From positions 62,001 through 126,000 of the forward strand of contig JAPDFW010000131.1 in assembly GCA_028826165.1 (NCBI GenBank): a DNA stretch of 64,000 nt, read 5' to 3'. How positions within the stretch are numbered: position 1 is the first letter of the stretch; each line of letters opens with the position of its first letter. Both the position numbers and the translations under genes were made by a program. Positions 50,307 through 64,000 of this stretch are shown in pieces. The stretch is from Anaeramoeba ignava BMAN (Eukaryota; Protista; Anaeramoebae). Below the pieces are notes generated by a model. The model worked only from the letters and a program-made list of their open reading frames with translations, ran no database searches and was not told the DNA's origin.

Positions 50307-52376
50307 TTAATTCAAATTCATTTTAGAATTAAATTCAGAATCCAATTTTGCTTGATCAAATATTTGTTGAGCATAATTTTGAAGATCTTTTAATTGTTTT
50401 GAAATGTATAATTTTAAGTTAGTTAAATCTTCAAGAATTGGAAACAAATCTTTTTGCCAAATTGATTGTTCTTCTTGAGATTTTTGAATAAATCGATTGA
50501 ATTCATCTGTTAAAGATTGCAGTTGATTTTGTTTTTGCAAAATTCGCGAAGATCCATCTTTTTGGATCTGCGAAATTTCATCTTGTAGTGCTTTTTGTTG
50601 ATTTTCCAATTCTTGATGATAGAAAAATAGCTCTTCTTTGAACTTATTATATTGTTGTTCATTTTTATCATTTTCATTTTGAAGTTGAAAAATATGAGTT
50701 TTTTTTTCGTTAATTTGAGAATCCAAATGATTCTGCTTTTCGCGCAACTGAGTAATGTCGTTTTGGATCTGTTGGGAATTGCGATTGAAATACTCGGCGA
50801 GATTAGTCAATCCTTGTTTGATTTGGGGCAAATTATCTGACAGCAAAGAAATCCCATTTTGGAGTGAATTTTGATTTTGTTTGGAAAAAGTATGTTCCGT
50901 TGAATCATCGATATCCTTCAGCGAGACTTGATTGGAATTGTAATCGCGGTTGATGGACAGTTGATAGTTGATGCCGTCGGTGTTGTTTTTGGCGCCCGAA
51001 GGGATCAAACGAAGAGTCATTGCGGATTGGTGATATTCACTCAATAATTTTTCCAATTCATCCATTTTATTTGAAACATTGATTTCCAAATCCCATGTTT
51101 TCTTCTTGATCTCCTGTTTGTGTTTTTCCACAGTCGCGATCGACTCTTCCATCTGTTTTTTTCGGATCATCATTCTTTGGTGGTCCTCCACGCTGATGTT
51201 CTGCGAACCAATCTCCTCCTGAAGCTGAGCTTTGCTTTGCAGAACACGTTGATATTCGGTGTTTAGTAACTGATTTTCTTGTTGTAGTTTCACACAGTAA
51301 TTCTCCAAGTTGCTGTTCTGGAAGGTAACATTGTTTGTCTCTTTTTGGAGATCGAAAATCTCTTCCTGCATTTGCTTCTTCTGGCCCTCAAGCTGCTGCA
51401 TATTGGAGAAGGCGGATTCGGAACTTTGGATGTGATTTTGAAGTTGAGAAATTTGTTCATTGAGTTCCTCAATTTCCTTGAGAACAAACTGGTTTTTTTG
51501 AGAGAACTCATCCTCAAGCTCCTTTTCGAGGTTCTGGAACTGCTCATCTTCGCCAGACATGAAGCACTGGTATATCTTAGTCAAGTATTCAAAAAAAGCT
51601 AGTTCATTTGCTTGTGGTTCAATAGTGGCATCTTGCAGATCTAATGTTGGCTCGCCATCAAGCACCGCTCCCGAATTGGGCTGAGAAACCTGCTCGTCAT
51701 ATGTCAGTAACTCAACCAACCAGGCCAGCGCTGCAAGAAGTGATGGCCACGCATGAGGCGATCCGACTGCGTGCAAGGATGATTTGTTAATGATAAAAGG
51801 ATATTTTAATCTTTTGAAAATCAAAGGAACATCATTTTCCCATTTTGTCCCGAAAGTGAAAAGCGGGTCGATTTGTTGATACAGAAACTCCAGAATGGAC
51901 GCGAAATCCTTCGCAGTTGGCTCTTTAAGCATCTTCGTTGTCACTGTTTTGCTGTAGCTGTGATTGCTCAAATAGCGAATGATGTTCCGTATTTGTTTTT
52001 CTTGATATTGCTTGTCCCGAATAGGTCTTGGATCGTCCATTTGCTTACTTTGATTCGGATTCACAAATACACTCGATTTTCGTGCTTGTGTTTTTCTTTT
52101 GGGAACAACTTCCGATTGTCTTGTTGGTTTCGCTTTGAGCATCCTTTTCGGTTTGGATCGTTCGATTTCTGATTGTCTTGGTTTATTTCCTTCTTTTTTT
52201 CGTGGCTTTTTGATCGTTACTTTTTTCCGAATTGGTTTCTCCATGTTTGTTGATCTTTTTTTTTTGTTTTGATTTCCATTTCCATTTCCATTTCCATTTC
52301 CATTTCCATTTCCATTTCTGTTTCGAAGTATATTTGATGGTCTTTCGTTTTGATTCATAATTGTTCTTGTATTCAT
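50307..52376 (-). CDS. NDC80: Kinetochore protein Ndc80/HEC1 (CH domain plus coiled coil), intronless
   Basis: DPRPIRDKQYQ, LKEPTAKDF..ILEFLY..IDP, LKYPF..NKSSL.AVGSPHAWPSLLAALAWL, long coiled coil, loop LRLIPSGAKN. Confidence 0.95.
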   Translation of the reverse strand: MNTRTIMNQNERPSNILRNRNGNGNGNGNGNGNGNQNKKKRSTNMEKPIRKKVTIKKPRKKEGNKPRQSEIERSKPKRMLKAKPTRQSEVVPKRKTQARKSSVFVNPNQSKQMDDPRPIRDKQYQEKQIRNIIRYLSNHSYSKTVTTKMLKEPTAKDFASILEFLYQQIDPLFTFGTKWENDVPLIFKRLKYPFIINKSSLHAVGSPHAWPSLLAALAWLVELLTYDEQVSQPNSGAVLDGEPTLDLQDATIEPQANELAFFEYLTKIYQCFMSGEDEQFQNLEKELEDEFSQKNQFVLKEIEELNEQISQLQNHIQSSESAFSNMQQLEGQKKQMQEEIFDLQKETNNVTFQNSNLENYCVKLQQENQLLNTEYQRVLQSKAQLQEEIGSQNISVEDHQRMMIRKKQMEESIATVEKHKQEIKKKTWDLEINVSNKMDELEKLLSEYHQSAMTLRLIPSGAKNNTDGINYQLSINRDYNSNQVSLKDIDDSTEHTFSKQNQNSLQNGISLLSDNLPQIKQGLTNLAEYFNRNSQQIQNDITQLREKQNHLDSQINEKKTHIFQLQNENDKNEQQYNKFKEELFFYHQELENQQKALQDEISQIQKDGSSRILQKQNQLQSLTDEFNRFIQKSQEEQSIWQKDLFPILEDLTNLKLYISKQLKDLQNYAQQIFDQAKLDSEFNSKMNLN

Positions 52377-52532: not shown

Positions 52533-52561
52533 AATCTTTTTTCATTTTTTTTCTTTTCAAA

Positions 52562-52666
52562 TTTAAACCAAAATTAAGAAAGGAAAATGAAAAACAAATT
52601 AAACAAATTTCATCAAGTTTATCTTCAACAATTTTCCTTTTTAAAAATGGAAAAGCAATAGAATAT
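52562..52666 (+). pseudogene. 5' fragment of an RCC1-repeat gene interrupted by the transposon
   Basis: Frame FKPKLRKENEKQIKQISSSLSSTIFLFKNGKAIEY ends at the TSD and continues in frame at 63683. No in-frame ATG before an upstream stop at 52523. Confidence 0.75.
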
Positions 52667-52720
52667 GGTAGGGGTAAATTTGACCTATTTTGATCTACTG
52701 CCTATTTTTATCTACTTTTT
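52667..52720 (+). repeat. Left terminal inverted repeat
   Basis: GGTAGGGGTAAATTTGACCTATTTTGATCTACTGCCTATTTTTATCTACTTTT. Confidence 0.85.
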
Positions 52721-54964
52721 TTACAATTTTTTTGATTTTCATTTTAAACACATTTTTGATGCTTAATTCTGATTAAAATAATTCTCTTTTCATCAATTTC
52801 CCTTATCACAATTCAAAATATGAAAAATTTATGATCTATTTTTTATTTTTTTTTTGGTGCAAACAATTTAGAAGCAAACATAAATCAATTTTATTTATAT
52901 AATTACTTCTCATTATTATGTTTAATTTTCCTTTTTTAATTCAGAATCCCGAAATAATTACACTGAAATATTCATTCCCATTTTTTCATTTTTTTGATTC
53001 TCTTTAAAATATTTTTCTGCTTCATAAATCCTCACTTTCTTCAAGTTAACTATCTTTTTTTTTATTTAATTTCTTTTTTTCTTATTTCTTCTCCTAATTA
53101 CTTTTCTCATTTTGTTTTATTTAATATATCTTTTTCATTCTCAAAAAAAATTATTTGCTCTTAATTGTTATTCTTTTTCATATTTTTTCTTAAATTAGAT
53201 ATTTCATCTATCTTTGCTTTTGATTATTTTTTACCATTTAATTAATTTTTTATTTTCCAACTCTATTTTCACTTATTATTTTATCAATCTATTCAGATCA
53301 TTTGCAAATAATATCTCACAAATTTAAGATGAATTTTTCCTTTATTCCAATAATTCAAAAAAGTTATCAAGTTTAAATTTCCAAAAAGCTCTCAATTTTT
53401 TCTTCAAGATATTTAAATTTTAATTTTATGTCTTGCTCTTTTTAATTTAATTCTCTTTTTCTAAATTTTGATTACTCAGCTCTAAAAAATATCATTTTTT
53501 CAATAAAGAAATATCAAGTTTTTTTATTTACTTTTTTTAAATATTAATTACAAACATGTAATAGTAATTTTGGAAATTCATTTTTGTTGTTTATTCTCTA
53601 CTTTTTATTGTATTCAAAAATGAAATAAATTGAGTAAATTCAAAATACTCATATTTTCTTTTTTTTTGTTGTCTCAAATAAAATCTTAAGTTTTAATATT
53701 TTTAATAAATATCTCCCAGAAATATTCTTTTATTATTTGATTTTTAATTGATTTATATTCCTGAAGCTTTAATTATAAGTTTTATTTTCTTGATTAAATC
53801 ATATTAAATAATTTCATAAATTATTAAAATATTCTTTTATTATTTTCGATAATTAATTCTATATTCATAAAAGTTTTTTTGTAATATTTTTTTATATTTA
53901 TTTATTTTAGAATGTTTTATTTTTTTAATCTTAATTTTTATCTTCACAAATCAAAAATTAAATTAAAAAAATAAAATCGGAAAAAAATAATAAAATAAAG
54001 ATTTTTCTTAAAGTTTATAATTTAAAAGAAATTCCAATTTAATCAAAAAAAAACTATTTTTATTATGATTGAATGAATTTTAAATTATAAATTTTTTTTA
54101 TTTAATTATTTAATTCAAAAAATCAAATTGTTTTTTAATTTAAAGTTTCCATTTTTATTTTTTTTGGAGTTTAATTTTCATTTACTTTGATAGAAATATA
54201 AAGATTTTATCAATTTATAGAATTCAGTTTAATATTATATTCATTGTTTAAAAATTCTGAAAATTATTTCAAATTAGAGAATTAGAAAGAATTAAATCAA
54301 TTTTAATCTGAATCAAAATCTAATTTCACTTTTGTTATTATTAATTTTATAATTGAATTGAAACCATTTCATTCTTTTTTTTGATAAATTTGATTTTAAT
54401 TAAGAAATAAAATATATTTAAAACATCTCTTATGACTCTCTAATATTTATTTTTTAAATAATATATTAAATTAATCCTTAAATATTTCTTGATTTTTTTA
54501 TTCCAAATTTTTTTTAAATTCTTTTTTTAAAATTATTCAAAATATCAATTTTCATTCTGATAAATATAAAAATACCTAAATAAGTAAAAATTCTTATTTT
54601 AATTAATATCTGAAATCAAATTACAAATTAATTATTTATTAAAATTATTAAAAATAGTTGAAATAAATTTATTAATTTTTTTTAATTTCTTTTCAAAATT
54701 TATAATATTTAGCATTTGAATATAAGAATTGGAAGAATAAAAATTAAGATAAAAATAAATAAATGTTCATTAATTATAATTTTAAAATTGAATTTGATTT
54801 AATATAAAATATTTATTATCCAAAAAAAGAAAAAAAATGGATTTGATTATTTTTTTTTGAGTTATAAAAATATCATAATTTTTGATTTAAATTGAATAAA
54901 TAATTTCCATTAAAAATTAAATTCAAGTAATTTTAAGAAAATTGGAATTTTTTTTGATTTTTTT

Positions 54965-55780
54965 TGATTTTTTTTCTCAATAAAGAAAATCTATTTAAAA
55001 ACAATTTTATTTCTTTTCTTTTTTTTGTTCTTATTTCTTTTTATACAAAATCTTTAATTAAAATTAGAAAGTTTTTTAATTATTAATTTTATTTTAAATT
55101 TATGTTATTTTATAAATTATTTTTAATTCCAGATTTTTTTTTCAATAAAGAAAATCTATTTAAAAATAATTTTATTTCTTTTCTTTTTGTTCTTATTTCT
55201 TTTTATATAAAATATTTAATTAAAATTAGAAAGTTTTTTAATTTTTAATTTTATTTTAAATTTATGTTATTTTATAAATTATTTTTAATTCCAAATTTTT
55301 TTTTCAATAAAGAAAATCTAATTAAAAATAATTTTATTTCTTTCTTTTTGTTCTTATTTCTTTTTATATAAAATATTTAATTAAAATTAGAAAGTTTTTT
55401 AATTTTTAATTTTATTTTAAATTAATGTTATTTTATAAATTATTTTTAATTCCAATTTTTTTTTTCTCAATAAAGAAAATCTAATTAAAAACAATTTTAT
55501 TTCTTTCTTTTTTGATCTTATTTCTTTTTAATAAAATCTTTAATTAATTTAGAAAGTTTTTTAATTTTTAATTTTATTTTAAATTAATGTTATTTTATAA
55601 ATTATTTTTAATTTCAGATTTTTTTTTTCAATAAAGAAAATATATTTAAAAACAATTTTATTTCTTTCTTTTTTTGTTATTTCTTTTTATATAAAATCTT
55701 TAATTAAAATTGGAAAGTTTTTTAATTATTAATTTTATTTTAAATTAATGTTATTTTATAAATTATTTTTAATTCCAATT
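54965..55780. repeat. Tandem satellite, ~163-bp unit x5, inside the transposon
   Basis: The CAATAAAGAAAAT anchor recurs at 54978, 55143, 55305, 55468, 55629. Confidence 0.92.
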
Positions 55781-56505
55781 TCGTTTTACAATTAGAATCG
55801 AAATAAGATGAAAATGAAATTCCAGAAAAATCGATTTATCAAAAAAATCTATCCCAATTCAAAATGATAAAATTATATAATAGTGAGAGTAATCAATCCT
55901 TTTTTTTCTGTTTTTCCAATGTATCTATCATTATTTCTCTTTTCCATTTTTTTTTCTAATCAAATAATTATGGGAAAATCATCTCATCTTACTTTTACCT
56001 AAAATATTCAATTCAATTCAATTCAATTTAATTTAATTCAATTTAATTCAATTCAATTTAATTTTGAATCGATTTTAATTGATAAATACGTTTTCCGTTT
56101 GTGCAGAACTTATTTCTTTATGATTTTCTCTAGAAATTGAAAAGTCAACAAAAAAATGCAATTAATTGATTTCGAGTTAACATAAGAAGAAAAAAAACAA
56201 AAGAACTTAGAAGCTTTTTCTTCATTTATTATTATTATTGCTCAGTTATGATCCCAATATTTGATTCTTCTTCTCCTTTAAATTAATAAAGAAAAAAAGT
56301 GGAAAAAGAAAATTGTTGAAGATGAATTTTATTAATTGATTCCATGAATTGAAAAAAAAAAAAGAAAAATGAATTTTAAAAAAAAGGGATGAAGAATTAT
56401 TGATCGAGAATATTTTGAATTTCAATCAAAAAAAATCGATTAAAAACCAAGAAAATTCATTAAAATAATTAAAGAAATTGATTGTGTTCTAAGGGATTTC
56501 CCTTT

Positions 56506-58756
56506 TTAATCCTCATCTGAATCTGTTTCAGAATTTGAATTTGATCTTGATTTGAAATCTGAATCTGAATTTGAATCTGAATCTGAATCTGAATCTGAAT
56601 TTGAATTTGAATTTGATTCTGAATCTGAATCTGAATCTGAATTTGAATCTGAATTTGATTTTGAATCTGATTCTGAATTTGAATTTGATTTTAATTTTGG
56701 TTTTGGTTTTGAATCTGAATCTGAATTTGAATCTGATCTTGATTTTAATTTTGATTCTGATTTTGATTTTGATTTTGATTTTGGTTTTGATTTTGATTTT
56801 GATTTTGATTTTGATTTTGATTTTGATTTTGATTTTGATTTTTGATTTTGGTTTTAATTTTAGCTTTCTTTTTTTTCCTTTTTCTGAATGTGAATTTGAA
56901 TTCAAAATATTTAAATTGTAATCATCATTTCTTTTTGGGATTCTTTTTGATTTTCTTTGTAGAATTTTTTTTGATTTTAAAATTGAATTAGTTTTCGAAA
57001 TGGAACTAAAATCAATATTAGACTCAATACCAACATTTGTTTCCTTTTTCTTTTTTTCTTTTTCTTTTTCTTTTTCTTTTTCATTTTCATTTTCTTTTTC
57101 ATTTTGTTTTTGTTTTTGTTTTTGTTTTTCATTTTGTTTTTCATTTTGTTTTTCATTTTGTTTTTCATTTTGTTTTTGTTTTTGTTTTTGTTTTTGGTTT
57201 GATATTGTTTTGCTTCTTGTTTTTCTTGTGAGTTTTTCTTTTTCTTTTTCTTTTTCTTTTTCATTTTCATTTTGGTTTTGATTTTCTTTTTCTTTTTCTT
57301 TTTCTTTTTCATTTTCATTTTGGTTTTGATTTTCATTTTCTTTTGCAAATTGTTGTTTGGATATTTGGGAATTCATGTAATCTGAATCTGAATCTGAATC
57401 TGAATCTGAAAGAAACTCAAAATCTTCATCAAATTCAAAATCTTCATCAATTTCAAAATCAGGATCTAAATATGGATGATTGAGAAAAAGTGAATTTGAA
57501 TTTGAATTTGAATTTGAATTTGAATTTGAATTTGAATTTGAATTTTCAGAACTGAAATCAAAATTTCCATCTCTCGATATTGTGGTAGACCATCTTGTTT
57601 GCCAATACTTTTCTTCTTGTGCTAGATGCGCAGAGAATGACTCCAAATTTGTTCTTGATGTGGGGAAAATATCATTTAATCTCCTGTTATAACGCTCGAC
57701 ACATCCATTGGTTCTTTTTATTTCCTTAGGCAGTTCACTATAGTTCCACATCTGTGATCTGAGATCAGACATAAAAGTTGTACGGAAATATCTAAACACT
57801 CTTTCCTGATTCGGAAATTTTTTTTTGAGCTTTTTTACTTTATCTAAGATATTTTCTTGAGGCACAAATGGTAGTTTTTGTAACTTTCTTTTTAATTTTT
57901 TATGTATAGGTTCATTCAATCCTAGTTCTTGAAATTTTCTATTTAAACATTGACAATAATGAAAATAACACCCAATGATTTTTGAGTTAGGAAAAATCCG
58001 ATCCAGTGACTTTTTCAAATTCAATTCAAAATCAATCGTTATATAATCTGGATTAAGATCTGGAATTAGACCGAGAAGCTGAGCAAAGAAAATTAAGTAG
58101 TTTTGGTATGATTTAGTTTCAGTTAAACCATATAAGACAGGATAAAATAAATTGAGTTTGGGTAATTTGGCCATAACGACTATCATTTGTTTAAATCCTT
58201 TTGGAGCCACTTTAAAAGTGCCGTCTATGAAAATTTGTTCAGCCAAGCTTAAATTATAAATCATAGAACTACTAGCCCATATATAAATATTAAATGGTGA
58301 CATTTGCTCCACTCTGAGAAAATCTGTCTTGGAAAGAGTTTGGTGATTTGAAATTCTGGAAATCTTCTTCTTCTTTTTTTTTCCAGATGGCAATCTGATG
58401 TTCTTTACATAGTTCTTAACTTCTTGATGAGATGGAGTAATATAAGCTTTTTCTAAATCTGAATCAATTCTTACACACATTTCTCTATATACTCTATCAG
58501 GAGTGAAAATATTATCCAGCGCTAATTCCTCCACTAAATTCCACAAATCTGCAACTTCTCTGGATTGACTTATCCTTTGGCAAGTTGGTTTATGCTGTCC
58601 ATTTGTAGTGCATTGGAGATTGGGATTATAGAACAATTTGGCAGTCATTCCACACCTTTTTCTACATCTATACCAACCAGTTGTATTAGTAGAGTTGTGT
58701 CTATTCTTGGAAAATGGGTATCCGTCAATTGTAATTTGAGGTTTGAATTTCTTCAT
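56506..58756 (-). CDS. MULE-family DDE transposase with N-terminal FLYWCH/WRKY-like zinc finger and low-complexity tail (1-nt slip near 56840; ORF track ends 56528, corrected stop 56506)
   Basis: IDGYPF..WYRC...C...H..C; IFIDGTFK (D1), YITIDFE (D2), GCYFH (CxxH), RTNGCVERYNRRL (E). Confidence 0.92.
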
Positions 58757-59889
58757 AAAAAATTTTTTTTTAAATCAAAAATCAAAAATGAAAAATAAAA
58801 TCAAAAATAAAAAATGAAAAATGAAATTGTTAGAATTGCTTTTTCAGTTTGATTTGAGAGATATTTTAGTTCATTTTTATTGCAAAATTTGTTTTGTTTG
58901 TTTTTTTTTTAATTTTATCATCATTAACGAAAAAAGGAAAAATTCAAACCGTTAAATTTCAAATCTTAGTTATTCGAATACTTTAAATAATAAATAATTG
59001 AGAATATAATTGAATATCATTTTTAAATTTTGAATTGATGAATTTTCTTTATTTAGAATTATAATTTAATAATTCTAATAATGATATTCGAATAATAAAA
59101 TATTTTAAATTTGAGAGATTCCAAAACCAAATTGATTAATTTTTTATTAAATTTTTATTCAAGAAATAACAATAATAAATCAATAATTTTGTTTTAAATT
59201 ATCCTTTCAATGATTTCTTCCTTTAATAATAAATTTAATTAAAATCAAATTTTGTTAAATTGTGGATTGAAAAGAACATAAATTGGATTTTTTTATTATT
59301 TAGTTTTAATTAACATAGAACAACTATAAATCAATTTTTAATCAGAGATTCAAGTATTTTCCAATATTTCTTGTTGAATTCAGAACAAAAAAAAACAAAA
59401 TATTGATTTTTTCTAATCCATTTTTTCTCAATTTTTTCCCAATTTTTTTGCTAACTAAAAATAGTTTATCAAATTTATATCTTCAATTACTTATAAAAAT
59501 AATAATTCTAATCAATATATTCTTTCTTAAATATACTTTTAATTATAATTTATAATATTATTTGTAATTAAAAAATTATTAATCATTGTTTTATTTGAAA
59601 ATCCAAATTTTTTTATTTTTTCAAATTTTATTAAAGTTATATAGTTATTGAAATATCTTTTGAATAGATATTCATTTAAAAAATCTTTTCTAAATTACAA
59701 GTTAAACCATTTACTAAATTTTTACAAAAAAAAACATTTTTTCATTTTTTCATTTTTTCATTTTTTTCTTTATTTAATTTATTTTTCCTTTTCATTTTTA
59801 TTTATGTTCTTTTGTTTTCAGTGCTTTTTTTTTTGTGCATATTCTTTGATTTACTTATTTCGTTTTATTTAGAATTTGTATAAACATTT

Positions 59890-60712
59890 TCTTTAATTAA
59901 TAATTTAATAAATAAATTAATTAATAATTTAATAAATAATTTAATTAATAATTTAATTAATAATTTAATAAATAATTTAATAAATAATTTAATAAATAAT
60001 TTAATAAATAATTTAATAAATAATTTAATAAATAATTTAATAAATAATTTAATAAATAATTTAATAAATAATTTAATAAATAATTTAATAAATAATTTAA
60101 TAAATAATTTAATAAATAATTTAATTAATAAATTTAATAAATAATTTAATAAATAATTTAATTTAATAAATTAATAAATAATTTAATTAATAATTTAATA
60201 AATAATTTAATAAATAATTTAATAAATAATTTAATAAATAATTTAATAAATAAATTAATAAATAATTTAATTAATAATTTAATTAATAATTTAATAAATA
60301 ATTTAATAAATAATTTAATAAATAATTTAATAAATAATTTAATTAATAATTTAATAAATAATTTAATAATTTAATAAATAATTTAATAAATAATAATTTA
60401 ATAAATAATTTAATAAATAATTTAATAAATAATTTAATAAATAATTTAATAAATAATTTAATAAATAATTTAATTAAATAATTTAATTAATTTAATAAAT
60501 AATTTAATAAATAATTTATTAATAATAATTTAATAAATAATTTAATTAATAATTTAATAAATAATTTAATTAATAATTTAATTAATAATTTAATAAATAA
60601 TTTAATAAATAATTTAATTAATAATTTAATAAATAATTTAATAAATAATTTAATTAATAATTTAATAATAATTTAATAAATAATTTAATTAATAATTTAA
60701 TTAATAATTTAA
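59890..60712. repeat. 12-mer minisatellite (AATAAATAATTT) inside the transposon
   Basis: Direct reading of the tandem units. Confidence 0.92.
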
Positions 60713-63621
60713 AAAATTGATTCTAAATGTTATTTTCAATAATTTCAAGATTGAATTCTTATATCATTATCCAAAAAAAGCTTGAAAAAGAAAACAAGAA
60801 TTAAAATGTAAATTATGAATTCGTAAAGAATAATCAGGATGAAAAAGGAAAAAGAAAACTGTAAATATATTGGATCAGAAAACAAAAATCTTAATTAAAA
60901 ACAAACTGAAAAATAAAAAGAACATCATATATAATACTAATGAATTTAAATCAAAAATTCAAAAAACAAAATGGAAATTATTCAAATCAAATTGGAAAAA
61001 GAAAAAGAATTAAAATGAAACATTTTTTGAAGATAAATTTTTTCTGTTGAAAATATACTAAAACAATATTAAAATTATTGGGTTTTGTTTTAAAGAAGTT
61101 TTGATAAGAAATTTCATCTATTCTTTATTTTATTCATCAATTTATTATCAAAATCAAATGTGGTTAAATTTGTTGGATAGAAAAAAAAACAATTTTTAAA
61201 TTGAACCTTTTTTCTTTATATTTATGGAATAAATCAATGAAATCATCAATAAAGAATAAGAATTACATAAATTTATTTAAAAATGGATTTTCAAATAAAT
61301 TTAATATAATTAATTAATTATTATTTGATTATAAATAAAACAAATTATCTTCAAATTTTTTCCTTTTTTTAATAATTTGAAATAAGAAAATGTAAAAAAA
61401 AATTATTTTAAAAAGATAAGAATTGGTTTATATTTTGATTGAAATGATTGTATTTGTGAATATTTATTAACTTAAGATTTAATGAAAATGATTTTAATTT
61501 TTTTATTTCCAAATATAAATAAATTTTAATTTAAATAAATCAAAAAGAAAAGGAACTAATTTTTTGGAAGAATTTTCAATAATTTCAAATAATATTATAT
61601 TTAGAAATATTAATCAAAACATTGATTTATAAAAGAATATTTGTTTGATTCTTTGTTTTATAATTGAAATTAAATTAAAAAATGAAAAAAAATAATTTGC
61701 AATTTTCGTTCCAATTTTCATTTTGATTTTTATTAAAATTATAAAAAGAATTTGGAAATAAAATCATTTATAAAATAACAATAATTTAAAAGGAAATAAA
61801 GAGTTAAAAAACTTTCCAAAATTAATTAAATATTTTATATAAAAAAAACTTAAAAGAAAAAATAATTCAATAACTTTTTTGATTTTAAATTATTTATTTA
61901 AATTTTCCTTTTTAAAAAAAAAATTTCAATTTTCTTAAAATTATCTGAATATAATTTTTAATGCAAAATACTTATTCAATTTAATTCAAAAATATGGATA
62001 TTTGGTTTATTATAATAAAAATAATTAATATTAATTTTATTGTTTATCCTGGATAATAAATATTTGATAATATAATTAAATTGATTCTTTAAATTATAAA
62101 TTGTTAATGTTTATTTATTTAGATTTTAGTTTTAATGATTTCAATTTTAATATTTAAATTATCAATAATATTCATTTTCAATAAATATTAAATTAATTTG
62201 ATTACTTTATTTCCATTATTTTAAATAATTTTAAATTATAATATATTTATAAATTTTAATTAAAATACTCTCTTAAAAAATAATATTTGTTTAATTTATT
62301 AATTTTAAATTAAAAATTATTTTAAAAACATTTAAATTAATTTTTCATTTTCATTTTATTTTTGATTCTTAATTTAAATTATAAACAAAATTTGAAATTC
62401 AAATAATTTATAAAATAATAAGAATTCATAATAAAATGAGAAATTGAAAAAGTTTAGAAAATTAAATTAAAAAATTTTTTAAAAGAAACAAGAAAAAAAA
62501 TGAAATTTTCTTTTTCCAATCAAAAAAAAATATAAATTAATTTTTTACAATTATTAATAAATAAAAAGTTGAGAACTGATTTTGGAATTTGAGATATTTT
62601 TATTTATTTGCAATTGTTTCAAACCAAGAAATTGTAAAAAAAAGCATTTTAGAAAACGAGAAAAAAACCAAAAAAAAAAGAAAAATAAAGAAAAAATAAA
62701 TTATTCCTTTAATATTTTATTTATAAGAAAATTGATTATGAATTCAAAAATATCTCTTAGATCTTTTTTTATTCATTAATTAGATATAAATGATTAAAAA
62801 AAAAGTGATAGGTTTATTTCACTAAAATTCCACAAAATTAAGAAAAAAAAATAATTCAGTTTTCTTCAAATTCAAATTGAGTTAAGTTTCTCTCAATTCT
62901 AAACTTTAAATATAAATTTAAAGAATTCATAGACAATAAATCTAATCTTGAATTAAGTTTAAAACCTTTTTAAAATCTGAATAATTCTCAGAGAGTGAAA
63001 GAAAATCTAATTTGAAAAAAATCAAATTGAAAACTGGAGATTCAAAATTATTTTTATTTTTGAATTAAGATCATTAAATAAAAGAAATTTATTAATTAAA
63101 TAATCATTCAAATGTATTGAAAAAAATCGTTATTTTGATTATCAAAAAATTTGGGCAATTTCAGACTTTAGGAAATTTCAGATAAATTGAGATTGACCTC
63201 ATATTTTTCATTTAAATCATTAAATTTAAGAAAATTATAATTATTTAAAAATAACCCTTTTTACCAAATTCATTAATCTGTGATAAAATATTTTTTCATA
63301 AAAACAAAAGGAAAATTTAATTGAAAATTTGTGATATCAAAAAAAATCAATTTTGATTTTAAATAAAATAAATAATTTATTTGAAATAAAACATCTCAAT
63401 TTTGATTTAATCCAAAAAAGATTCCTCTTGACCTATTCATTTTTACTTATTGTGGATATTTGAAAAAAAAGTTGGCTATTTTTTATTATTATTCTGGATT
63501 TATAAAAAAAGTAAAATTAAAAATTGTGCAGTAAAATGTTTTTAAATTAAAAAATAAAGAAGATTTTGAAATTGAATAAAAAGTTAAACATATTGAAAAA
63601 AATTGATATTTTATTTAAGAT

Positions 63622-63674
63622 GAAAAATAGACAATAGTAGGCAGTAGATCAAAATAGGCAAAATTCCTATTTCC
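63622..63674 (-). repeat. Right terminal inverted repeat
   Basis: Reverse complement reads GGAAATAGGAATTTTGCCTATTTTGATCTACTGCCTACTATTGTCTATTTTT. Confidence 0.85.
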
Positions 63675-63676
63675 TA

Positions 63677-64000
63677 GAATATTTAAATGAAAGAGATTCA
63701 TATCAAAATATTGAAAAAATCCAAATTGAAGAAAATATTCAAAAAATAACTTTTGGTTATCAAGATAATGAAGCTATTTTAACAATAGAAGGAAATGTAT
63801 TTGCCAAAGGAATAGATATTAATCCAAATAATCCAAAAGAATTTATCAATATTTCATCATTAATTGAAGATACAAATGATAGAATAATTGAAAATATTGT
63901 TTCTGGAGCTAATTCAATTTACTTATTAACTTCAAATCAAAATGCTTATGGAATTGGTTCAAACTCTTATGGTCAACTTGGTTTTGATTATCAAATCCTT
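63677..64000 (+). pseudogene. 3' continuation of the interrupted RCC1-repeat gene (runs off the window)
   Basis: Open frame EYLNERDSYQNIEKIQIEENIQKITFG...ILTIEGNVFAKG...IENIVSGANSIYLLTSNQNAYGIGSNSYGQLG shows the RCC1 repeat signature. Confidence 0.85.

Follow-up and report, generated by a model that had tools for sequence, protein, structure and literature searches.

We identified an 11,008-bp unit at positions 52667-63674 of the window (the whole 64,000-nt stretch of DNA analysed) which, judging from its sequence, is very probably one copy of a low-copy, recently mobile and autonomous Mutator-like (MULE) DNA transposon of the metamonad Anaeramoeba ignava. The copy is inserted in a fragment of an RCC1-family gene and is bounded by terminal inverted repeats (TIRs) and a target-site duplication (TSD). 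Its features and those of its flanks are as follows:

52562..52666, + strand, upstream part of the interrupted RCC1 fragment (...ENEKQIKQISSSLSSTIFLFKNGKAIEY), without an in-frame ATG, the first ~25 codons of the paralogs being deleted
52659..52666, no strand, left TSD copy TAGAATAT, an 8-mer present once in the paralogs
52667..52716, + strand, left imperfect TIR, which begins GGTAGGGG and contains a perfect 21-bp core (52684-52704)
52684-52698 and 52701-52715, + strand, two tandem 15-nt motifs CCTATTTTKATCTAC in the left TIR
54967..55792, + strand, array of 5.1 tandem copies of a 162-bp unit, matching at 93%
56528..58756, - strand, transposase open reading frame (ORF) of 742 aa, 20.2% of the element
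57400-58756, - strand, conserved transposase core (aa 1-452), an N-terminal Cys/His beta-strand domain followed by a DDE RNase H-like core
59892..60717, + strand, 12-bp satellite TTTAATAAATAA, 69 copies, 0% G+C
61714..62505, - strand, diverged inverted copies of the 162-bp unit, relative to 54826-55815
63625..63674, - strand, right imperfect TIR, terminating ...CCTATTTCC, with the 21-bp core at 63638-63658
63675..63682, no strand, right TSD copy TAGAATAT, the same 8-mer as on the left
63683..64000, + strand, downstream part of the RCC1 fragment (LNERDSYQNIEK...GSNSYGQLG...), which runs 268 nt past the window to a TAA stop

The element starts with GG and ends with CC, and the 8-mers abutting these termini are identical (TAGAATAT at 52659-52666 and 63675-63682), both as recorded in the initial annotation; the flanking 9-mers are unequal, which sets the TSD at 8 bp, not 9. 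This length recurs as a perfect duplication in a second copy of the element and in three of three copies of a sister MULE family. Also present as first described was the perfect 21-bp inverted core (CCTATTTTGATCTACTGCCTA), at offset 18 from the left end and, reverse-complemented, at offset 17 on the right. Alignment of the two ends delimited imperfect TIRs of ~50 bp around this core, in agreement with the short TIRs proposed earlier. We searched the 42.8-Mb genome (81% A+T) for the core with up to two mismatches, revealing seven matches, all of them identical and located at ends of element copies, compared with none for the reversed 21-mer used as a control. This arrangement of the ends is above chance.

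The target belongs to the RCC1 family, which comprises well over 150 genes in this genome. At 15 of the 16 RCC1 loci examined, 20 nt ending in TAGAATAT are followed directly by TTAAATGAAA-like sequence, and these 15 paralogs, with one unbroken TAGAATAT at the same position, represent paralogous empty sites. Flanks were compared with the paralogs one at a time, and contiguity is taken from the paralogs, not from a joined, element-deleted sequence. The exact insertion point claimed at the outset was thereby confirmed, and the frame on which that claim was based (...FLFKNGKAIEY followed by LNERDSYQNIEK...) had been read correctly. The paralogous empty sites show that the inserted unit comprises all 11,008 bp and a single 8-mer. 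The accompanying claim that an RCC1-repeat gene had been split held only in part: the insertion does lie within RCC1 sequence, but the target was not intact, having lost its ATG region, and RCC1 homology stops ~613 nt past the TSD, where an ankyrin-BTB gene starts after the TAA stop of the fragment. Compared with its paralogs, the host RCC1 copy was probably a gene fragment or already a pseudogene and, because it lacks the start codon and the distal two thirds, the insertion was probably without functional cost. No allelic empty site was found in the assembly, in which the Ndc80 flank occurs just once and the right flank matches only paralogs at <=91% identity. The junction of an element-free allele would read ...GCAATAGAATAT followed by TTAAATGAAAG.

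Searching the genome with the TIRs and the transposase located three complete copies, of 11.0, 12.1 and 16.7 kb, plus a further one truncated by a contig end. Those outside the window are:

C107:192743-204822, 12,080 bp, with a perfect 8-bp TSD (AAAAAAAT)
C51:26025-42693, complete copy, 16,669 bp, with unequal flanks (ATTTATAT versus AAATTCAA)
C51:1-8785, truncated copy, ending at the contig end

The three full copies occupy unrelated loci and align collinearly over their whole length, from initial G to final C, with different flanks and no homology seen among them past the GG...CC ends. All copies are collinear with the window copy, and length variation is accounted for by satellites and by one nested transposon of 2.46 kb, inside the C51 copy. 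Substitutions between copies range from 0.4 to 2.6%, and no two copies are identical. According to the initial annotation, further copies should be bounded by the same TIRs and by 8-bp duplications; the TIRs were indeed present at all seven ends, and a perfect TSD in the C107 copy (as in the window copy) but not in the complete C51 copy. Its description as a large family was not supported, with only three full copies and one truncated, and no short derivatives in a 21-mer search of the whole genome.

The transposase gene is intact and encodes a DDE enzyme of the MULE/IS256 type. Its core residues are D178, D242 (in a DFE triplet) and C263/H266, together with an RTNxxxERxNRxLN motif. A word-based protein search revealed seven relatives, all with <=35% identity, and in an alignment of nine sequences (the transposase and eight distant relatives) D178, D242, C263 and H266 were invariant, while the Glu of RTNxxxERxNRxLN was kept in every aligned sequence reaching that region, bearing out the intact D-D-CxxH-E motifs reported earlier. 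Assignment to the MULEs was likewise sustained by the Pfam MULE domain PF10551, which matched residues 175-269 above its gathering score (37.7 bits versus a cut-off of 27.6, E = 2.8e-9), and by a predicted fold resembling the IS256-family transposase of ISCth4. Specifically, the AlphaFold model has a pLDDT of 85-94 across residues 140-390, and its top Foldseek matches in the PDB are ISCth4 transposase chains (E = 3e-8 to 6e-5, probability 1.0), with TM-scores that are low (0.31-0.39) because domain placement differs.

The C-terminal ~290 aa of the 742-aa ORF are low-complexity microsatellite read-through, and the other two intact copies have ORFs of only 482 and 504 aa. Three copies keep the 452-aa core uninterrupted, whereas that of the fourth carries a frameshift. 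For the 162 N-terminal residues, no zinc-finger family was matched in Pfam at E values up to 10, a sequence search of the PDB yielded nothing relevant, and the model has a pLDDT of 55-70. The Cys/His pattern and this moderate-confidence model suggest that the N-terminal domain may be a WRKY/FLYWCH-like Cys/His zinc finger.

The share of the transposase, first put at only ~20% of the element, was measured at 20.2%, leaving ~80% that is non-coding, extremely AT-rich and dominated by satellites. This non-transposase DNA has a G+C content of 0-21% and only low-complexity open frames; the window copy contains no other kind of open frame outside the transposase, and no second transposase or other TE ORF. 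Judged from open frames, host gene fragments of the kind that define Pack-MULEs are absent between the TIRs, where the interior consists of satellites. The 162-bp array is 66-69% identical to arrays of a similar satellite that are dispersed through the rest of the genome (942 first-look candidates). Its inverted units are 74-79% complementary over 118-177 nt to 54826-55815, with inverted matches at C132:123714-123924 and counterparts in the C107 and C51 copies, and give the element a long-range internal inverted structure. In the C107 copy the 12-bp satellite has grown to ~2 kb, and in the C51 copy it has expanded into interrupted blocks totalling >2 kb. Overall, the ~8.8 kb beyond the transposase contain no genes and consist of AT-rich satellite DNA whose length varies between copies. 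By sequence similarity, the interior satellites are members of genome-wide satellite families or resemble them and, since they also change length between copies, the large size of the element reflects satellite accretion and expansion, not cargo genes.

Mobility of the element is suggested by its ends, TSD, copies and paralogous empty sites. In the mechanism that we propose, the N-terminal Cys/His (WRKY/FLYWCH-like) domain of the transposase would bind the paired 15-17-nt motifs located 17-18 nt inside each end, a role assigned by analogy; the bound transposase would synapse both ends and cut at the GG...CC termini; the whole 11-12 kb would be inserted at a staggered cut of 8 nt in the target; and repair of the stagger would yield the 8-bp TSD.

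The copies might instead be immobile relics of a past burst, with a transposase that is inactive or an element of 11-17 kb that is too big for efficient mobilisation. Such a history would fit copies that differ by 0.4-2.6% with none identical, a count of just three to four without derivatives, a frameshift in one copy, the breakage of another near its promoter by the nested transposon and a 0.5-kb deletion, and an unstable ORF tail (742, 482 and 504 aa). We consider it unlikely, if a reading to be taken seriously, given that the 452-aa core is unbroken in three copies, where every catalytic residue is present, that the TIR cores are identical at seven of seven ends and that two copies have a perfect TSD.

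Two further readings question the unit itself or its effect on the host gene. The low coding fraction (20%), the occurrence of the interior satellites elsewhere in the genome and the foreign transposon nested in one copy could indicate a nested or composite cluster, or else a segmental duplication in which a MULE gene lies by chance. Against this stand the exact ends and first-G-to-last-C collinearity at three unrelated loci with differing flanks, the perfect 8-bp TSD in two copies, the paralogous empty sites that define an inserted unit of 11,008 bp plus one 8-mer, and the window copy's lack of a second transposase or other TE ORF, all of which render it very improbable. Were the element spliced from the RCC1 transcript as an intron, the reading frame would be regained at the price of two additional codons and the host gene would remain functional; in favour of this are a GT one base inside the left end (TATG/GTAGGG) and an AG created by the right TSD (CCTAG/AATAT), which allow the element to be removed in frame as GT...AG with a gain of 6 nt. 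This AG, however, comes from the TSD of the window copy only and is missing at that place in the C107 copy, the host copy has neither a start codon nor its distal two thirds, and 11 kb is far beyond the usual intron length for a compact genome; we regard intronic removal as extremely improbable. A recently mobile, autonomous MULE remains the reading we favour.

The Mutator/MULE superfamily, founded on maize MuDR, comprises eukaryotic relatives of bacterial IS256. The present element shares with it a DDE transposase with the Pfam MULE domain, a CxxH after the second Asp, TIRs and a TSD of expected length, but its TIRs are ~50 bp and imperfect (versus ~220 bp in MuDR), its TSD is 8 bp (versus the usual 9) and, unlike MuDR, it has a single ORF without mudrB and spans 11-17 kb, ~80% of it satellite-rich and non-coding. 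Both its TSD (8 bp) and its TIRs (~50 bp) fall within the ranges of described MULEs (TSD 8-11 bp, TIR 14-500 bp; PMC6446971). We therefore place it as a new family within the known Mutator (MULE) type; it is not a new kind of element and reveals no new mechanism.

Also close in description are TvMULE1-4 of Trichomonas vaginalis (PMC2725143; TvMULE group, PMC6446971), which also have a protist host, a single ORF and short imperfect TIRs (20-38 bp; PMC2725143). TvMULE1 likewise carries an N-terminal Cys/His DNA-binding domain (FLYWCH there, putative here), and TvMULE copies are also ~1% diverged. In contrast, the TvMULE1 and TvMULE2 consensus sequences measure 2.1 kb and 2.5 kb, respectively, and their TSDs are 9-11 bp or longer, compared with 11 kb and 8 bp here; the 8-bp TSD lies outside the 9-11 bp of the TvMULE group, and the likeness is one of described features. 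As far as the account in PMC2725143 goes, Mutyl of Yarrowia lipolytica is likewise a large MULE, 7.4 kb long, and its imperfect TIRs measure 22 bp, but it has two ORFs and a TSD of 9-10 bp, while the protist element EMULE-Ei1 of Entamoeba invadens has a transposase of ~456 aa (versus the 452-aa core here) but is 2.9 kb long, its TIRs being 187 bp and its TSD 9 bp. Set beside the present element by description only, Spectre has an 8-bp TSD (PMC6446971, Table 1) but differs in its TIRs, which are perfect and 74-76 bp long, in its C2H2 finger ORF and in its arthropod hosts (PMC6446971), and Rehavkus carries a minisatellite (PMC6446971, Table 1) but differs in its PHD finger and in a TSD of 9 bp (PMC6446971).

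Within the same genome, the sister MULE family (loci L007, L008 and L013) consists of 2,739-2,745-bp elements with ends GGTAAAATTTTCGGC... and an 8-bp TSD in all three copies. It resembles the 11-kb family in its GG...CC ends starting GGTAAA, its 8-bp TSDs and its transposase architecture (30% aa identity) but is compact (2.74 kb) and without satellite arrays. Family C, at ~3-3.4 kb, has long inverted ends. Other MULE families in this genome span 2.7-3.4 kb, the 11-kb copy being ~4x longer; large size is particular to this family and not a trait of the lineage. The A. ignava genome paper describes no nuclear transposons (PMC11550330), and the window copy is an autonomous MULE that has well-defined boundaries and looks intact, from a very little-studied protist genome. 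With the compact sister family, it gives the lineage hallmarks of GG...CC ends, 8-bp TSDs and short TIRs, which can help to annotate the genome and to mask transposase ORFs and satellite-rich elements from gene sets. The 2.7-kb and 11-17-kb families, with the same transposase architecture, also form a small natural experiment on satellite build-up in DNA transposons in an 81% A+T genome.

Finally, the two copies on C51 are inverted relative to each other, and 17 kb separates their left ends, which point towards one another. Each of these ends adjoins the same in-phase (ATTTAT)n microsatellite and the same plus-strand 8-mer (ATTTATAT), and the right-end flank of the complete copy is unrelated. 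Two origins of this arrangement were rejected: an inversion by homologous recombination between the copies would pair one left flank with the other's right flank, which was not seen, and an inverted duplication of element plus flank does not match flanks that are reverse complements in element orientation, not identical. Alternative (reversed-ends) transposition is known for Ac/Ds and P elements, and we know of no documented case for protist MULEs. The arrangement at C51 is what would be expected had the left ends of two different copies been used in one such event at a single 8-bp target. It seems doubtful to us that the MULE actively rearranges chromosomes and acts as a carrier of satellite DNA; if true, the 162-bp and 12-bp arrays would be carried to new loci with each jump.

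The boundaries of the element were read directly from the window, and the identical flanking 8-mer, GG...CC termini and 21-nt inverted core at offsets 18 and 17 reported in the initial annotation were all found. The features at and within the insertion are as follows.

50307-52376, minus strand: Ndc80/HEC1 kinetochore gene (Pfam E 3e-47)
52659-52666: target-site duplication (TSD), left copy, TAGAATAT
52667-63674: element, 11,008 bp, first bases GGTAGGGG, last bases TATTTCC
52684-52704: 21-nt core, left, CCTATTTTGATCTACTGCCTA, offset 18 from the end
54967-55792: 162-bp tandem array, 5.1 units
56528-58756, minus strand: transposase open reading frame (ORF), 742 aa, the sole coding region of the element
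61714-62505: diverged 162-bp units in inverted orientation
63638-63658: 21-nt core, right, reverse complement, offset 17 from the end
63675-63682: TSD, right copy, TAGAATAT

The 9-mers on either side of the element are not identical, which sets the TSD length at 8 bp. When aligned, the two ends pair as an imperfect terminal inverted repeat (TIR) of ~50 bp, in which a 15-nt motif, CCTATTTTKATCTAC, forms two tandem units in every left end and, in the right end, one exact unit followed by a diverged second one. With up to two mismatches allowed, the core had seven matches in the 42.8-Mb assembly, all at ends of element copies, and the reversed 21-mer used as a control had none; the match is beyond chance. 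No short derivatives with the same ends were found in this genome search with the core.

Searching the genome with the transposase core and 600 bp of each end revealed the following copies.

Contig C132 (window copy): 11,008 bp
C107:192743-204822, minus strand: 12,080 bp
C51:26025-42693, plus strand: 16,669 bp
C51:1-8785, minus strand: incomplete, ending at the contig start

Every copy is collinear with the window copy from first base to last, with substitution divergence between copies of 0.4-2.6% (unique terminal 2.3 and 3 kb). Three copies have an unbroken transposase core; in the incomplete one, a frameshift falls near residue 142. The expectation that other copies would share these ends and an 8-bp TSD held for C107, which has the TIRs and a perfect TSD (AAAAAAAT), but not for the flanks of the long C51 copy, which are unlike (ATTTATAT left, AAATTCAA right).

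The 742-aa ORF passes Pfam MULE, and its alignment with four distant paralogs from the same genome and four database relatives (24-28% identity) bears out the D-D-CxxH-E motifs first assigned to it: D178, D242 (within DFE), C263 and H266 (CYFH) are invariant, and the Glu of RTNxxxERxNRxLN is present wherever the aligned sequences extend that far. An AlphaFold model has pLDDT 85-94 over residues 140-390 and, in the N-terminal region, a small beta-sheet (strands at 8-52, pLDDT 55-70) bearing a W-x-C...C...H-x3-C pattern. The top Foldseek matches in the PDB were IS256-family ISCth4 transposase chains (E 3e-8, prob 1.0), with retroviral integrase cores next; Mutator transposases have an established bacterial relative in IS256. 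Microsatellite read-through makes up the C-terminal ~290 residues, and this tail is probably dispensable, since it is shortened in other intact copies (ORFs of 482 and 504 aa). Anatomy, copies, TSDs and catalytic residues are direct observations, for which a mechanism can be proposed from established DDE cut-and-paste transposases and MULEs: the N-terminal Cys/His domain would bind the paired subterminal motifs, both ends would be synapsed and then cut at the termini, and strand transfer into the target would occur with an 8-nt stagger.

The interrupted sequence, which includes 63683-64000, belongs to an RCC1-repeat family of extraordinary size. Among 2,239 first-look candidates, at least 150 loci show 78-86% protein identity across 195 aa; most are ~600-aa open frames, and the family is ~90% identical at the DNA level. 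The left and right flanks were each matched to RCC1 paralogs on their own. Uninterrupted paralogs read ...FLFKNGKAIEYLNE..., and at 15 of the 16 paralog loci inspected, the 20-nt stretch that closes with TAGAATAT ran directly into TTAAATGAAA-like sequence. These paralogous empty sites confirm the insertion point, as initially placed, together with the 8-bp duplication. The element was also said to split an RCC1-repeat gene; RCC1 sequence is indeed interrupted, but the gene is not intact, with its start region and distal part gone. Compared with paralogs, the host copy has lost the ATG-bearing stretch and first ~25 codons, retains the common leader motif and has no in-frame ATG after the upstream stop. 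Its homology ends ~613 nt past the TSD at a TAA, beyond which an ankyrin-BTB gene (1,071 aa) begins with its leader and ATG. The resulting fragment of ~230 codons, versus ~600 in full-length paralogs, is most simply a pseudogene. No second haplotype of the locus is present in the assembly.

Several minor observations concern this locus. The leader motif (T-rich, ...TTTTTTCATTTTTTTTCTTTTCAAA, right before the ATG) occurs at window 52535-52560, at L029:697-725 and at paralog loci such as L051; being common to RCC1 paralogs, the ankyrin-BTB gene and the start-less fragment, it suggests a promoter or 5'UTR module common to these expanded families. One base inside the left end is a GT (52666-52669), and the right TSD yields an AG (63673-63677); were the element spliced out as an intron between them, the RCC1 frame would be restored with 6 nt added. 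This geometry is probably a coincidence, because the AG is peculiar to the TSD of the window copy. Directly left of this locus, the Ndc80 gene is present as one copy, and its closest database relatives share only ~30% identity with it, which fits a host eukaryote that is deeply divergent and poorly sampled.

The initial estimate that the transposase takes up only ~20% of the element stands, the other 80% being satellites and AT-rich DNA; the element thus carries satellites rather than genes. Other coding potential in the window copy is nil (G+C 0-21%, open frames low-complexity). A 12-bp satellite (69 units in the window copy) is one source of length difference between copies, spanning 0.8 kb in the window, ~2 kb in C107 and several blocks in C51, and the 162-bp array is a second. 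The 162-bp unit is a member of a satellite family scattered through the genome (942 first-look candidates), which has dozens of ~700-800-bp arrays (at least ~40 loci) that match the array in the element at 66-69% identity; portions of the element's terminal 600 bp resemble tandem arrays elsewhere in the genome. Several dispersed arrays, such as those at C97:52270, C15:80538 and C115:568371, are no more than a few kb from RCC1 paralogs.

On C51 (loci L031, L035, L032, L036 and L033), the two copies are inverted with their left ends facing across 17 kb. Both left ends (C51:8785, minus; C51:26025, plus) adjoin (ATTTAT)n, whose phase is kept from one flank to the other, and on the plus strand both have ATTTATAT as the adjacent 8-mer; AAATTCAA, to the right of the complete copy, is unrelated. 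The arrangement fits a single target struck by two left ends, that is, alternative transposition, although it may be a coincidence or an assembly artefact, as (ATTTAT)n is abundant in the genome (~17,000 30-mer matches). The long C51 copy is further lengthened by a nested foreign transposon, together with which 0.5 kb has been lost ~290 bp upstream of where the MULE transposase begins.

L036:2671-5128 (C51:32671-35128): nested DNA transposon, 2.46 kb, inside the 16.7-kb copy; TIRs ~22 bp, beginning CGAAACTAC
L036:3039-4889: its 616-aa ORF, encoding a helix-turn-helix plus DDE-like motifs; no Pfam family scored significantly

Relatives (31-38% identity) occur on contigs C64, C62, C92 and C74.

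Window G+C of 18.9% agrees with the published genome A+T of 80.65%, in a paper with no description of nuclear transposons (PMC11550330). We found ~25 more loci with MULE transposases at ~30% identity. Among them, the elements of a fully delimited sister family (L007, L008 and L013) are 2,739-2,745 bp long. Their TIR is ~28 bp and begins GGTAAAATTTTCGGC, and each of the three copies has a TSD of 8 bp (ATTTTTTT, AATTATTT and TTATTTTC). Another family (L010-L012, L017 and L018) spans ~3-3.4 kb, and its inverted ends measure 400-600 bp. GG...CC ends and an 8-bp TSD are therefore common to the element and at least the delimited sister family, whereas large size is peculiar to the element's family within this genome.

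Judged by sequence, the element carries all of the sequence-based features that define MULEs and represents a new family in a known superfamily. Its size is unusual but not unprecedented, because plant MULEs of at least 10 kb exist. It is larger than the described protist and fungal MULEs TvMULE1 (2.1 kb), TvMULE2 (2.5 kb), EMULE-Ei1 (2.9 kb, 187-bp TIRs) and Mutyl (7.4 kb, 22-bp TIRs), and its TSD length of 8 bp is less common; TSDs are 9-11 bp in the TvMULE group, where TIRs are 20-38 bp, and 9 bp in EMULE-Ei1 (PMC2725143, PMC6446971). An 8-bp TSD has likewise been reported for Spectre (PMC6446971).
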